A stretch of 64,000 bases of DNA, from NCBI GenBank assembly GCA_977020255.1, contig CDROCS010005513.1, positions 1-64,000 of the forward strand, given 5' to 3'. Origin of the DNA: Obrimoposthia wandeli. Lineage: Eukaryota. Every line of letters starts with the position of its first letter. Position 1 is the stretch's first letter. The notes beneath the pieces were generated by a model. The model had not been told where the DNA came from, did no database searches, and saw only the letters and a program-made list of their open reading frames with translations. This document shows positions 379-7,286 of this stretch, piece by piece. A program made the translations under genes and the position numbers.

Positions 379-2136
379 TTAATAAGCAATTCGCTTATTA
401 TTTTGCAAGTGTGTATAACTCACATTATCACTCACCGAGCCGCCACCCATAGTGCCACAACCTAAAGTCCAAGATAAATTCAGACCATTATCAGCACCAA
501 TACAGCCTTGAGTACCTGCAGTCGAAACCAATACACGGCTCACCTGCACGACCGCGCTGAAAGCACGTACTCTGTTTTTATCATTGGTATGGATAATCGC
601 AGTATGGCCCTTCCCTTCTAACTCTAAAATTTCATACGCATGGTCTAAAGCCATCTTGTCACTTTCATTACGAATAAATGACAATACCGGCGCTAACTTC
701 TCACGCAATAAAATGGAAGAAAAATCATAAGGCTGCACTTCAGCAAGTATCAACTTAATATCATAATTACGTCCGATCCCTGCTGCTGCACAAATATCCG
801 CCGCAGACTGGCCAATAAATTCAGCTTGCAAACCTTTACCATTAGCAAAAATATTAGCCAGTAGCAATTCGCGCTCAGCCTCAGTTAATACTACGGCACC
901 ATAGGCTTGCATATTGAACAAAAAATTATCAACAATTGCACAATCGACTACCAGATTATTTTCACTGCCACAGACAACACCGTTATCAAACGCCTTACTG
1001 TTGATTACTTTTCTTGCAGCATCTTCAACATTGCAATCATCACAAATCCAAACAGGGGCATTACCTTTCCCCACACCAATAGCGGGCGTACCCGAAGAAT
1101 ACGCACTCTTCACCATAGAAGGACCACCCGTCGCTAGAATCATACTAATGTCGTCATGAGTCATGTACGCATTCGTTACTTTTCGATTCGCCGCAAGCTC
1201 AGGTGTTTGCACTAAATTTTCTGGAGCCCCGAATCGTTTCAATACTTGGCGAATAATATCAACCGTTTTCTCTCCCACCAAACGGCCCTTACGATGAGAA
1301 CTAATCACGATGGCATTACGTGATTTTAAGCTAATCAATGTTTTAAATACGGTCGTCTCTACAGGGTTAGTAATCGGAATCATGCCGAATACAACACCGA
1401 TCGGCATTGAAACTCTTTCAATGCCATTAGCTTCCAATTCAATAGCGCCATTACCTGGTTTATTAACCAAAGAGTCTGCGACATCCAAAGAGCCTAATTT
1501 TATTTTTAAAATTTTATGCTCAACAACTCCCATTCCCGATTCTTGTTGCGTTAGCTCAGCAAGATCTTTCGCTTGAGCATAAATTGCTTTTGCAATTTCG
1601 GTGATAATTTCATCAACCGTGTTTTCGGGCCAAGATAAAAATTCTTCATGTGCCAATCTGGCCAATGTCATTTGTTTATCAACCGAAGGAATTCTGGCTA
1701 TTTTTAAAGCAGCTTGTTGGTTTAAAGGCTGAGATTTTCGTACACGTTGAATAAGCGATGCATTGAATAATTTTAGAAATTCCTGGTAAGCCAGCTCATC
1801 GATTTCTTGTAATTCTTCCAACTTGCTAGCGGATAAAAATAGCACTTCTGCCGCTTCAGTCACCTTAACCGTCATGGCTCTTGGCTCATCTGCAATAAGG
1901 CTCATTGCCCCCAAAAGATCACCTTTACCATAATACTCCAAGGCTATATCAGCACTGACATCAGCATCATAATACTGAGTGACTAATTGCCCACTCAATA
2001 TATAAAAACAACCATCTGGTTGATCACTTTGCTTAAACAAAAACTCTCCCAATTGAAAACTTTTTACCAAACAATATTTCTTTAAACGCTCAACTTCATT
2101 CCTTGGGAATGATACTGCGGTTGGGACATTCATCAC
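379..2136 (-). CDS. Cyclic-nucleotide-binding domain fused to CoA-acylating aldehyde dehydrogenase (AdhE N-terminal / EutE type)
   Basis: aa ~1-135 have cNMP-domain hallmarks (LFKQSDQPDGCFYILSG; GDLLGAMSLIADEPRAMTV). The rest follows the AdhE ALDH domain (ESGMG, PIGVVFGMIPITNP, ATGGPSMVKSAYSSGTPAIGVG, catalytic FDNGVVCGSE, TLGCGTMGG). No Fe-ADH domain follows. Confidence 0.85.
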   Translation of the reverse strand: MMNVPTAVSFPRNEVERLKKYCLVKSFQLGEFLFKQSDQPDGCFYILSGQLVTQYYDADVSADIALEYYGKGDLLGAMSLIADEPRAMTVKVTEAAEVLFLSASKLEELQEIDELAYQEFLKLFNASLIQRVRKSQPLNQQAALKIARIPSVDKQMTLARLAHEEFLSWPENTVDEIITEIAKAIYAQAKDLAELTQQESGMGVVEHKILKIKLGSLDVADSLVNKPGNGAIELEANGIERVSMPIGVVFGMIPITNPVETTVFKTLISLKSRNAIVISSHRKGRLVGEKTVDIIRQVLKRFGAPENLVQTPELAANRKVTNAYMTHDDISMILATGGPSMVKSAYSSGTPAIGVGKGNAPVWICDDCNVEDAARKVINSKAFDNGVVCGSENNLVVDCAIVDNFLFNMQAYGAVVLTEAERELLLANIFANGKGLQAEFIGQSAADICAAAGIGRNYDIKLILAEVQPYDFSSILLREKLAPVLSFIRNESDKMALDHAYEILELEGKGHTAIIHTNDKNRVRAFSAVVQVSRVLVSTAGTQGCIGADNGLNLSWTLGCGTMGGGSVSDNVSYTHLQNNKRIAY

Positions 2137-2149
2137 ATCTTCCTTAAAT

Positions 2150-2167
2150 TAAGCATAAATTTGCTTA
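2150..2167. promoter_or_regulatory. Palindromic candidate operator in divergent promoter region
   Basis: TAAGCA-TAAATT-TGCTTA, in the 172-bp gap between the cNMP-ALDH gene and ORF 2309. Confidence 0.35.
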
Positions 2168-2308
2168 TATGATTTTCGAATAACGTTGCATTCTTATATA
2201 AGAATACCTACAATCCTTACACAAAATGCGCCAGAACGGAATGCTTATTAACTACTCAGGGAGAGTCTTAAGGCGTAATAACAAGAGAGTCACCACAAGG
2301 GATAGGTT

Positions 2309-3532
2309 TTGGATAAATTACGTGCAAAAGCAGTAGAAAGTATTCTAGGCATATACTCACCGTTTTATATTAAAGATATGAAACTCGATGCTGAACATGA
2401 ACTTTTTACCATTCAGCTAGATGAAATAAACAATAAAAATAAATCAATAACATCGCGCTTTAGAAGCACTTCAAAACACATCACTTATTGCTGGCAACAT
2501 GTAAAACTGGGTCGCTTTAATACCCAAATAATTTTCAAAAGCTCAGAATCAAATTTTAATCGTTTAACAAGACTAGTCTGCCCTTCTTTTTTAGGATTAG
2601 CAGAACAAAAATACACCAAGCAAGCCGAAGAACTTATTTTATTTGCTCATGGAAAAAAAATAAGTGCCGATATAATTTCGACCTTAACAGGTTTGCAAGC
2701 TGACGATATTAAACGCTTCATCCTTGATACTGAAAGCAACCAAATAACTCAAACTACCAGCAATTTATTGCCATTAGAAACGGATGCTATTTGGATTAAG
2801 ATCATTAAACGGGAATTGCCGTTAAAAACCAGTCAAACCCCTTTAAGAATGCTACTTCACAAATTAGAGCTGAGCGAAATAAACAACAGTGATAGCTCTG
2901 TATTACAAGAGTCCGTTGCAACATTACGTGCCTTCTTCATTAAAAACAAAGCCAACCTTACCTCAGAATATCAGCAAATTGGGGCAAAAAAAGAAGAAGT
3001 ACAAAGCCCTCTAGAAAAACCTGTTACACAAAAAGCAGGGGCTAGCAGACTCACACCCGCACACCCAGTATGGGACAACATTTTAACTGAGAAATTTTCG
3101 TTGATGTCATCAAACTTGGCATTTAACCTCTACATATCTCGTTTAAAGAATCTTTATAACAAAGACTTATCCAGCTCAGAAAAACGTGACATTGTTATTG
3201 AGCTAATGAAATATCTAAAGAAAAATATCGCCAGCTTACGTAATGAACTTATTGCTATTAAGAAAATTGCAGAGACGATTGATAGCGAGCCCAAAGACAA
3301 TAACATTCCAGATAAGTCAGACGCTATTTGGCAAGACATACTTAATGAACGCGTAGAAATTAAAAGCAGCAAGCTGAATCTAAATTTATTGCTGGTAAAA
3401 CTTAAGAGCCAAACGGCCAAAGGTTTTGAGCAAGAATCATCAGAAGAACTTCATCAGTTTTTTAGTGACAACTATAGAAGCTTGAAACATGAAATAGAAA
3501 GCTTATCAATTTGCAAAGCTGAAGCCGTTTAA
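2309..3532 (+). CDS. Hypothetical protein: ISL3-transposase-like N-terminal/HTH region plus three ~70-aa internal repeats
   Basis: TTG start after AAGGGATAGG. LGIYSPFYIKDMKLD, CWQHVKLGRFNTQI and KYTKQAEELILFAHGKKISADIISTLTGLQADDIKRFI parallel the ISL3 N-terminus. Repeats are P...DAIW..I / P..HPVW..I / P...DAIW..I. No DDE domain. Confidence 0.7.
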   Translation: MDKLRAKAVESILGIYSPFYIKDMKLDAEHELFTIQLDEINNKNKSITSRFRSTSKHITYCWQHVKLGRFNTQIIFKSSESNFNRLTRLVCPSFLGLAEQKYTKQAEELILFAHGKKISADIISTLTGLQADDIKRFILDTESNQITQTTSNLLPLETDAIWIKIIKRELPLKTSQTPLRMLLHKLELSEINNSDSSVLQESVATLRAFFIKNKANLTSEYQQIGAKKEEVQSPLEKPVTQKAGASRLTPAHPVWDNILTEKFSLMSSNLAFNLYISRLKNLYNKDLSSSEKRDIVIELMKYLKKNIASLRNELIAIKKIAETIDSEPKDNNIPDKSDAIWQDILNERVEIKSSKLNLNLLLVKLKSQTAKGFEQESSEELHQFFSDNYRSLKHEIESLSICKAEAV

Positions 3533-3562: not shown

Positions 3563-4564
3563 ATGAGTAACGTACAAATTACATCAGCATTAGTCGACCT
3601 AGAGACCTTAGTCGATAAGATTAATCAGCGAGAGTTTTTGATCATTGCCGCTGACGAGAAGATATTAAAACAACTGCCATCAGGTAACTGGATTGCAGGT
3701 ACTATTCCATACTTCATGGGTCAAGAAGGCGGAGAAATCAGCCAAGATAAAGCGTTTGTAAATACAATTGAAGGCCTTAATCTTAGCAACCAACCGCGTA
3801 TCATGCCATATGATATAAACTCAATTAAAAACATCGCCCAAGATGCTCCTGAAAATGGTTTCACCATTACCATTTTACCCGCGGGTAGCGCAATTCATGC
3901 GGAATACGCAGAGAACGCTCCGGGCTATGACAACATGTTTTTCTCACCAATTATTGGTTGGGTAGCCGGAAGTCACTTAGAACAAAACGATGCTCAACCA
4001 CAAGTCGGGTTTGGTACTGCAAACATGTTAATGACTGATAAAGCCATTGCAATGCATGTTCCTTTGTCTGATAGCCAATTTGCCAACATCAACATTGTGA
4101 ACTTATTTGAACAAGGCAACGGGCCAAAAATCAGCTTCAATGAAACTGGATTTTCAGCGAATGACTGCATGATCGATGGTAAAGCCGCTAAGTTATCTGA
4201 ATATGTACAAAATAATAATATCGATACCCGCCTACCTTTAGTCGCGGATTATAATGGTGTGAATATCAACGTATCGATTAAAGAATTACTCAGTGGTTCT
4301 GTTGATTTCTACGCGCCTATTTTTAAGAATGTTCAATATCAATTCGCCAACCCCGTTGCGGATTATGTGAGCGAGCTGAATAAATCCATCGCAAGCCAGC
4401 AGATTCCAGAAAACTGTTTCTCCTTTAACTGTATATTAAACTTTTTATATGCGGATTTAGAAAATAAAAAGACTGCTGAACTAACCGGTCCTTTTACTTT
4501 TGGTGAAATTGCTTATCAGCTACTGAACCAAACACTCGTCTACTTGAGCATTGAAAAAGCTTAG
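3563..4564 (+). CDS. FIST-like stand-alone sensor protein (probably DUF6976 family)
   Basis: LPSGNWIAGTIPYFMGQEGG near the N-terminus. C-terminal FSFNCILN and GPFTFGEIAYQLLNQTLVYL resemble FIST_C motifs. RBS AAAGGA, 30 bp after the preceding gene. Confidence 0.7.
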   Translation: MSNVQITSALVDLETLVDKINQREFLIIAADEKILKQLPSGNWIAGTIPYFMGQEGGEISQDKAFVNTIEGLNLSNQPRIMPYDINSIKNIAQDAPENGFTITILPAGSAIHAEYAENAPGYDNMFFSPIIGWVAGSHLEQNDAQPQVGFGTANMLMTDKAIAMHVPLSDSQFANINIVNLFEQGNGPKISFNETGFSANDCMIDGKAAKLSEYVQNNNIDTRLPLVADYNGVNINVSIKELLSGSVDFYAPIFKNVQYQFANPVADYVSELNKSIASQQIPENCFSFNCILNFLYADLENKKTAELTGPFTFGEIAYQLLNQTLVYLSIEKA

Positions 4565-4579
4565 ACTATTAGTAAGAGT

Positions 4580-5035
4580 CTAAACTTTCGCCGCTCGCAT
4601 CCAGCTGATTTGTGCATACAAGATCACGGCTGCAGCGGCTGTCCCCATCGGAAAAAGCGGCAATAATAAAATACCATAAACCCACACAATCGCCTGCTGC
4701 CATAAACCTGCCTGTGCTATCGAATACTTTACCAATAAATTAAAAATAATACTGGGAATCGTGATCGTAAAAAATATAGCAGAAAACCCTAACAAGAAAT
4801 GCATATTCTCTGACATACCCTCACGGGGTGCCGCCGCATTAAAGATACCCAACATAACCCCCATAAACAGTGCAATAAAAACGGCAAAGATAGTTATTAC
4901 ATTAACGGCAATACAAGCAGCATTGACCTTTTCCTGTAAAGACTCGGCTTCTTGTTGAGCATGCTGAGCAGACATACTTGAGGATACATCTGAACTCACA
5001 TCTGAACTCACATTTAAAGGCATCGCGATAACCAT
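4580..5035 (-). CDS. Small inner-membrane protein, about 3 TM helices; start uncertain
   Basis: Three hydrophobic segments after a Ser-rich N-terminus that contains a duplicated 12-bp unit (SSDV). Confidence 0.55.
   Translation of the reverse strand: MVIAMPLNVSSDVSSDVSSSMSAQHAQQEAESLQEKVNAACIAVNVITIFAVFIALFMGVMLGIFNAAAPREGMSENMHFLLGFSAIFFTITIPSIIFNLLVKYSIAQAGLWQQAIVWVYGILLLPLFPMGTAAAAVILYAQISWMRAAKV

Positions 5036-5195: not shown

Positions 5196-7286
<2,091 letters not shown>

Follow-up and report, generated by a model that had tools for sequence, protein, structure and literature searches.

Sequence comparison points to an ISL3 transposase N-terminal module domesticated as a host gene and paired with DUF6976, a protein of predicted FIST fold

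The analyzed window comprises 64,000 nucleotides (positions 1 to 64,000, forward strand) of contig CDROCS010005513.1 from the GenBank assembly GCA_977020255.1, filed under Obrimoposthia wandeli. An uninterrupted open reading frame (ORF) at positions 2309..3532 of its plus strand (stop codon included), further referred to as gene X, encodes a 407-aa protein with an N-terminal domain of ISL3 type and three helical repeats. Judging from profile comparisons, residues 1–145 of this protein descend from the N-terminal module of ISL3 transposases, consisting of a zinc ribbon and a helix-turn-helix (HTH). In the clade of X the zinc cysteines are lost and the scaffold of strands and HTH is retained. 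The next gene encodes a DUF6976 protein. Taken jointly, the ISL3 ancestry, the domestication and the gene pair formed by X and DUF6976 are, in our estimate, almost certain. The complete statement, which adds a regulatory mechanism for the ISL3-derived protein, we consider probable, with modest confidence.

Translation of X starts with a TTG codon at 2309, and a Shine-Dalgarno-like AAGGGA (2297..2302, plus strand, read from the sequence) lies 6 nt upstream of it. Thus, the intact 407-aa frame with a ribosome-binding site (RBS), noted in the initial annotation of this DNA, is borne out. The Shine-Dalgarno sequence is kept as AAGGRA across the Oleispira loci, and the position of the start codon is common to all orthologues, with TTG used in Oleispira and ATG in Bacterioplanoides. 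Close relatives of X form 47 clusters in a word-based search (48–93% identity, about 400 aa each), and distant ones form 163 clusters at E <= 1e-3 in an exhaustive profile search; every one of them is named "hypothetical". Scans of X itself against Pfam and NCBIfam, ISL3 models included, gave no match at E <= 1. The search of a language-model atlas returned unnamed clusters only, and the Foldseek comparison of the whole X model with PDB returned nothing at E <= 0.001.

The assembly has a size of 1.35 Gb in 6912 contigs. The contig of X is bacterial and Oleispira-like, with Oleispira metagenome-assembled genomes as its nearest relatives (86–93% protein identity), and a second copy of gene X, 83% identical, is found on contig C3962 of the same assembly. 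Hence two or more Oleispira-like strains appear to be present in the assembly, either as associates of a large genome that is presumably eukaryotic or as contaminants of it.

The N-terminal domain of X (aa 1–145, 2309..2743, plus strand) was compared with ISL3 transposases using hhalign. The query was built from 77 zinc-less family members of about 400 aa, X included, each cut to its first 155 aa, and the template from the N-terminal 150 aa of nine bona fide DDE-bearing ISL3 transposases taken from genome loci. The two profiles were aligned with the probability of 98.5% and E of 1.8e-15 over 135 collinear columns (positions 5–142 of X and 5–145 of ISL3), at an identity of about 15%. The reversed template yielded E of 0.47, and 20 column-shuffled templates yielded E >= 0.022. 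The three-repeat clade of X taken alone matched ISL3 at E of 4.2e-13, and the eight nearest orthologues alone, at 1.5e-5.

Three segments of the plus strand had been singled out in the initial annotation as resembling ISL3 N-terminal motifs, and in the hhalign alignment each falls on the very motif that had been named. Segment 1, LGIYSPFYIKDMKLD (L13–D27, 2345..2389), is aligned with LGLxxPWxVxxVxLD, and segment 2, CWQHVKLGRFNTQI (C61–I74, 2489..2530), with sWRHLDxxQxxTxL. Segment 3, KYTKQAEELILFAHGKKISADIISTLTGL (K101–L129, 2609..2695), forms the helix-turn-helix and is aligned with the HTH_Tnp_ISL3 region, FTxLFE...VAxLLGL. In X this region stays under the reportable Pfam score of HTH_Tnp_ISL3 (PF13542) and is aligned with the ISL3 HTH profile-to-profile. 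Residues W62 and H64 of segment 2 are invariant among the orthologues of X, and H64 is conserved in at least 90% of 125 family N-termini. In the AlphaFold2 model the domain is composed of the strands 19–27, 32–39, 57–67 and 70–79 followed by the helices 104–115, 120–127 and 131–151.

Members of the X family that still carry the CxxC pairs, about one-fifth of it, bridge X and the transposases. NCBIfam transpos_ISL3 (NF033550) was matched by 32 of the 125 family N-termini (best E 1.9e-11), Pfam Zn_ribbon_ISL3 (PF14690) by 23 (best 9.2e-8) and HTH_Tnp_ISL3 by 20 (best 1.2e-8); no family other than ISL3 recurred in these scans. The zinc-bearing members gave E of 1.2e-28 with ISL3 and 2.1e-25 with the group of X. 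We consider the N-terminus of X to be ISL3-derived because the profile-profile match is joined by these bridging members, which match all three models directly.

The weaker comparisons may still be read as a likeness due to chance, or to convergence of an unrelated protein with a beta-hairpin and an HTH. As a single sequence X matched no ISL3 model, its E with the ISL3 profile was just 0.017 over 30 columns, and the identity in the profile alignment is low. Moreover, the alignment of 18 orthologues gave no hhalign match with one distant ISL3 transposase (locus L008). The latter comparison was empty because the link emerges only with deeper profiles and the appropriate ISL3 subgroup. With these, E from 1e-13 to 1e-15 was obtained over about 130 collinear columns covering both subdomains, and the 21 negative controls produced nothing comparable. 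Further, the intermediates that keep their CxxC pairs and match the curated ISL3 models form a continuous series, and X alone matched them at E of 1.6e-7. Chance or convergence is thus highly improbable and close to refuted.

At the Bacterioplanoides locus L008 a complete ISL3 transposase (619–1896, minus strand, 425 aa, both zinc knuckles) adjoins a 342-aa ORF (1953–2981, minus strand). A candidate rejected in the course of the profile searches was the "CAP repeat" of PDB 8vd6_A, which matched the N-terminal profile at E of 2.7e-16. This repeat protein was designed de novo, and the match, whose score sums five weak matches to an idealized HTH, has no biological meaning. Designed repeat proteins can yield misleading PDB matches in this way.

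The X family is gammaproteobacterial and has no name: no name, Pfam family or paper was found for it or for its repeat. Its architecture is an ISL3-like N-terminus followed by one to six copies of a helical repeat of about 80 aa, and X, with three copies, fits this scheme. The repeat is present in 193 of the 196 collected family sequences. On the tree of N-terminal domains the family forms a single clade relative to the sampled ISL3 outgroup, with support of 99 in the Shimodaira–Hasegawa-like approximate likelihood ratio test (SH-aLRT). One group on this tree comprises multi-repeat proteins with zinc ligands present or absent (37 rows), another, short proteins in which the repeat occurs once or twice (36 rows). 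The group holding X (49 representatives, support 97) consists of three-repeat proteins and is uniformly zinc-less. The zinc label requires six parsimony changes on the tree, and at least two of them are forced by well-supported branches; hence the loss of zinc is derived and recurrent. In X no CxxC or CxC occurs within the first 150 aa, in line with the initial statement that the CxxC pairs are missing. The only cysteines there are C61, which is unconserved, and C91, and in the alignment K45–F51 and S78–R85 stand where ISL3 has its cysteines.

The C-terminal 260 aa of the protein consist of the helical repeats R1 (aa 150–230, 2756..2998), R2 (aa 245–323, 3041..3277) and R3 (aa 329–405, 3293..3523), all on the plus strand, recognized by the repeat hidden Markov model with domain E of 9.7e-27, 4.5e-23 and 1.2e-23, respectively. 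Pairwise hhalign comparisons of the three gave E of 6.1e-12 for R1 and R3, 5e-9 for R2 and R3, and 7.3e-5 for R1 and R2. Positions P6, W13 and E71 are invariant in an alignment of 34 repeats, and the last repeat coincides with the protein end in every complete family member inspected, including X. The repeat profile matched nothing in Pfam or among PDB sequences, nor did it match ISL3 catalytic regions or the N-terminal domain of the family itself. With full-length ISL3 alignments its E was 0.37–0.59, revealing no likeness of the C-terminal part of X to ISL3 transposases. The absence of a catalytic domain, claimed in the initial annotation, is upheld by the Pfam and NCBIfam scans, where no DDE domain was found at E <= 1. 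Since the repeat has no similarity to Pfam, PDB sequences or ISL3, we treat it as an undescribed domain that stands in X in place of the DDE catalytic domain. A wide fold search recognized nothing in X except the HTH. It produced CARD-like structural matches to the repeats; with Z about 5, the noise level for helical bundles, they were discarded.

Selection on X is that of a host gene. The pairwise ratio of nonsynonymous to synonymous substitution rates (dN/dS) among the Oleispira orthologues is 0.04–0.06 (for example, dN of 0.052 and dS of 0.846), equal to that of the neighboring DUF6976 gene. By parts of the protein, it is 0.05–0.08 in the N-terminal domain, 0.02–0.065 in the repeats and 0.18–0.38 in the 14-aa linker, which is relaxed. 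In Oleispira and Bacterioplanoides the repeat is confined to a single gene per genome, X thus being single-copy. Synteny of the locus is kept from Oleispira to Bacterioplanoides, Teredinibacter and Reinekea. In particular, the order of an aldehyde dehydrogenase gene followed by X and DUF6976 on the opposite strand is the same in Oleispira and Bacterioplanoides, at identities of 52% for X, 64% for the dehydrogenase and 68% for DUF6976.

The transposase origin, together with the patchy occurrence of the family (DUF6976 was found in 7 of 301 sampled gammaproteobacterial genomes), might suggest that the ORF of X is decaying insertion sequence (IS) debris, a still-mobile element or a part of a defense island. 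Selection and synteny refute this suggestion, and its probability is negligible. None of the orthologues has a broken frame, dS is saturated, and the chromosomal neighborhood is preserved across genera. No terminal inverted repeats were found bracketing X, the same as in the initial annotation, no DDE domain is present, and the searches of plasmid, phage and PADLOC (defense-system) collections with X gave nothing relevant. Neutral evolution of IS debris is therefore contradicted, and the proposal that a transposase module was exapted as a host gene agrees with the single copy, the synteny, the purifying selection and the ISL3 ancestry. Domestication of X is well supported by these data.

The partner gene (3563..4564, plus strand) starts 30 nt downstream of X, has its own RBS and encodes a 333-aa DUF6976 protein (PF22396, Pfam E 1.3e-129), a putative sensor. 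Its AlphaFold2 model (mean predicted local distance difference test, pLDDT, 80.5; predicted template modeling score, pTM, 0.84) was superposed on atlas clusters of FIST_N+FIST_C proteins (PF08495+PF10442) with template modeling scores of 0.78–0.80 over 315–326 residues and root-mean-square deviation (rmsd) of about 3.5 Å. These clusters include FIST domains fused to methyl-accepting chemotaxis protein (MCP), histidine-kinase and GGDEF outputs. The best PDB matches were to FBXO22, a FIST-containing F-box protein, with a weak E of 5e-3. Sequence scans of DUF6976 gave PF22396 only at E <= 1 and no match to PF08495 or PF10442. Going by the model, DUF6976 has the FIST sensor fold, on which ground PF22396 could be assigned to the FIST clan. 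A literature search on DUF6976 found nothing relevant.

The obligatory partner and the three repeats are the most informative context of X, and the initial annotation made no use of them. The pairing was constant in all samples. In six of the six distant family members looked up, DUF6976 lies directly downstream, and in two of them the genes overlap by 4–8 nt. These members were from Teredinibacter (417 aa) and Reinekea (235 aa), a 618-aa zinc-bearing protein, a freshwater protein of 240 aa and two further three-repeat forms. In the unbiased scan of the 301 gammaproteobacterial genomes for PF22396, the seven positive genomes contained eight loci, and in all eight the gene just upstream encodes a family protein or a lone repeat. 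At every locus examined the gene before DUF6976, on the same strand, is a member of the family or a stand-alone repeat. Complex prediction with full-length X and DUF6976 returned a score of 0.00; controls were not run, so this value weighs neither way on binding.

Divergently from X, at 379..2136 on the minus strand, lies a gene for a 585-aa protein in which a cyclic nucleotide monophosphate (cNMP)-binding domain (PF00027) is fused to an acylating aldehyde dehydrogenase of the AdhE/EutE type (Pfam and NCBIfam). The same fusion of a cNMP sensor and an AdhE-type enzyme is the divergent neighbor in Oleispira, Bacterioplanoides and locus L092. In Teredinibacter and at the loci L073 and L093 the same position is occupied by an unrelated acetaldehyde dehydrogenase of the DmpF type (Semialdhyde_dh/AcetDehyd-dimer). 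All examined three-repeat zinc-less members are divergent from an acylating aldehyde dehydrogenase, and these enzymes are of two non-homologous kinds. The dehydrogenase at 379..2136 is a likely regulatory target of X. The divergent intergenic region holds a perfect 16-bp palindrome, ATTCTTATATAAGAAT (2190..2205, no strand assigned), a weak candidate for the operator. It is unique in the window, but chance alone would give about 0.9 such matches with at most three mismatches.

Other branches of the family have a different setting. The Che-like clusters in loci L076, L087, L088 and L089 open with the genes for a multi-repeat member (517–632 aa) and DUF6976. In the first three of these the clusters contain response regulators, CheW, an HAMP-MCP with a short N-terminus and a hybrid CheA, and the L089 cluster was judged from gene sizes only. 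In L090, from genome G021, genes for CheR and CheB follow DUF6976. Upstream of the gene cluster in L076 there is a GAF-PAS-GGDEF-EAL protein.

On the other side of the pair, positions 4580–5035 (minus strand) encode a predicted membrane protein of 151 aa whose N-terminus carries an SSDVSSDVSS repeat. Its gene lies between DUF6976 and a FadH-like 2,4-dienoyl-CoA reductase (5196–7265). Same-strand ORFs of 131–137 aa occupy the equivalent position in L003 and L004.

Given the ISL3-derived front of X and the constant FIST-like sensor next to it, X is probably the DNA-binding half of a two-protein signaling switch. The N-terminal domain has a net charge of +4 and an isoelectric point of 9.1, resembling ISL3 N-termini, and the family profile showed a weak match to the Sleeping Beauty PAI HTH (E 5e-4). 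In the model, residues 99–156 are superposed on the HTH of sigma region 4, LuxR and resolvases with Z of 5–6.3 and rmsd of 1.6–3 Å. We infer from these features that the domain still binds DNA and, with a plausible target in the divergent position, that X acts as a host transcription factor controlled by its FIST partner. At most, X works like a transposase-derived regulator. The mechanism might be as follows. DUF6976 would sense a small molecule or a metabolic state and contact the helical repeats of X. Upon contact, the ISL3-derived HTH would bind to, or be released from, DNA between the two divergent genes (172 bp), with the palindrome as a possible site. In this way the gene of the cNMP-sensor/acylating aldehyde dehydrogenase and the X-DUF6976 operon itself would be controlled, which would make the pair a one-component regulator split into two proteins. 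Elsewhere in the family such a pair may be wired to the Che-like chemosensory clusters.

Several observations weigh against such a regulator. The HTH structural matches of X have middling Z, and the model of full-length X is modest (pLDDT 70.7, pTM 0.35). The region of the recognition helix, QADDIKRF, is not basic, the net charge of the HTH segment is −1, and DNA binding could have disappeared together with the zinc ribbon. The candidate operator is AT-rich and conserved within Oleispira only, and inverted repeats in the upstream regions of other lineages are unrelated to it. Moreover, a search for a palindromic half-site common to the upstream regions of six divergent lineages found none above the shuffled controls. 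Finally, in G021 (L083:2474-2767, minus strand; L090) a stand-alone single repeat of about 85 aa, without an ISL3 domain, stands directly upstream of DUF6976. Because of this case, the constant functional unit is taken to be the repeat with the FIST protein rather than the ISL3-derived DNA-binding module, and DNA binding may not be the core activity of the family.

According to the main rival explanation, X is an adaptor or a scaffold of a FIST/chemosensory pathway and not a DNA-binding regulator: the repeats dock DUF6976, one molecule per repeat, or other signaling proteins, and the ISL3-derived domain is repurposed for protein contacts or inactive. The position of the multi-repeat relatives and DUF6976 at the head of the Che-like clusters (L076, L087, L088), with CheR and CheB in L090, is favorable to it, as are the scaffold-like variation in the number of repeats from one to six, the repeat-only partner in G021, the loss of zinc ligands at least twice and the slightly acidic HTH segment. 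However, purifying selection on the N-terminal domain nearly equals that on the repeats, and this domain is kept in nearly all complete members (127 N-termini are listed); by fold and ancestry it is a DNA-binding module. Further, the clade of X is not located beside Che genes and shows the classic divergent layout of a regulator and its target, with aldehyde dehydrogenases of two unrelated types. We consider the adaptor unlikely, yet it is the alternative to be taken most seriously.

A broader generalization of the DNA-binding switch is more tentative, and we would not put it at even chances. It holds that an X-type protein and a stand-alone FIST protein of the DUF6976 type represent a new class of two-protein switches, in which the repeat would dock the FIST protein and the transposase-derived domain would bind DNA. 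The clade of X would then serve acyl-CoA-forming aldehyde oxidation, and the multi-repeat clade would be the direct transcriptional arm of the Che pathway.

In X, bacteria would offer a clear example of a domesticated DNA-recognition module of a transposase with extant intermediates from zinc-bearing to zinc-less forms, and the repeat of about 80 aa is a new protein domain with a testable partner. The pair would also open a first functional approach to DUF6976 and to FIST sensors in general, about whose ligands and downstream mechanisms little is known. In Oleispira, a marine bacterium adapted to cold, some step of alcohol or aldehyde metabolism may be under the control of the module, since the gene next to it encodes an acylating aldehyde dehydrogenase with a fused sensor. 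For annotation, the genes of the family are labeled "hypothetical", and their zinc-bearing relatives are at risk of being mislabeled as transposase fragments. Literature searches on ISL3 domestication and on the ISL3 Pfam domains found no described domestication.

Comparison with known systems starts with the ISL3 transposases (NF033550; PF14690 + PF13542 + PF01610), in particular the subgroup with LGLxxPWxV...WRHLDFFQ, to which X is collinear from aa 1 to about 145, with three motif blocks in common. Unlike them, X has no zinc cysteines, DDE domain (PF01610), terminal repeats or multiple copies; it is under selection typical of a host gene and has three novel helical repeats where the DDE domain would stand. 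Three of the four defining features, namely the zinc ligands, the DDE domain and the hallmarks of mobility, are lacking, and therefore X is not an ISL3 transposase. The HTH proteins of the sigma-70 region 4, LuxR/FixJ and resolvase types resemble residues 99–156 of X at the level of the fold only, over about 50 residues; unlike these proteins, X has no sequence relationship to them and lacks the context of a receiver or of sigma region 2.

FIST signal-transduction proteins mostly carry a fused MCP, histidine-kinase or GGDEF output. DUF6976 shares with them (PF08495 + PF10442; FBXO22 in eukaryotes) the full predicted FIST_N+FIST_C fold and the signaling contexts, Che clusters included. In contrast to them, it stands alone without a fused output, and the presumed output, X, is a separate protein tied to it by gene order only. 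Transposase-derived regulators are represented by the TnpB-derived TldR repressors in bacteria and by many transposase-derived transcription factors in eukaryotes. As in these systems, the DNA-recognition module of a mobile element was retained in X after catalysis had been lost, and X was fixed as a host gene. Unlike the TldR-type regulators, X, whose activity as a regulator is putative, has the ISL3 N-terminal module as its source, joined with a new repeat and a dedicated sensor partner. Thus, domestication of transposase DNA-binding modules is known, and what is new here is the ISL3 N-terminus as the source, the repeat and the dedicated FIST partner.

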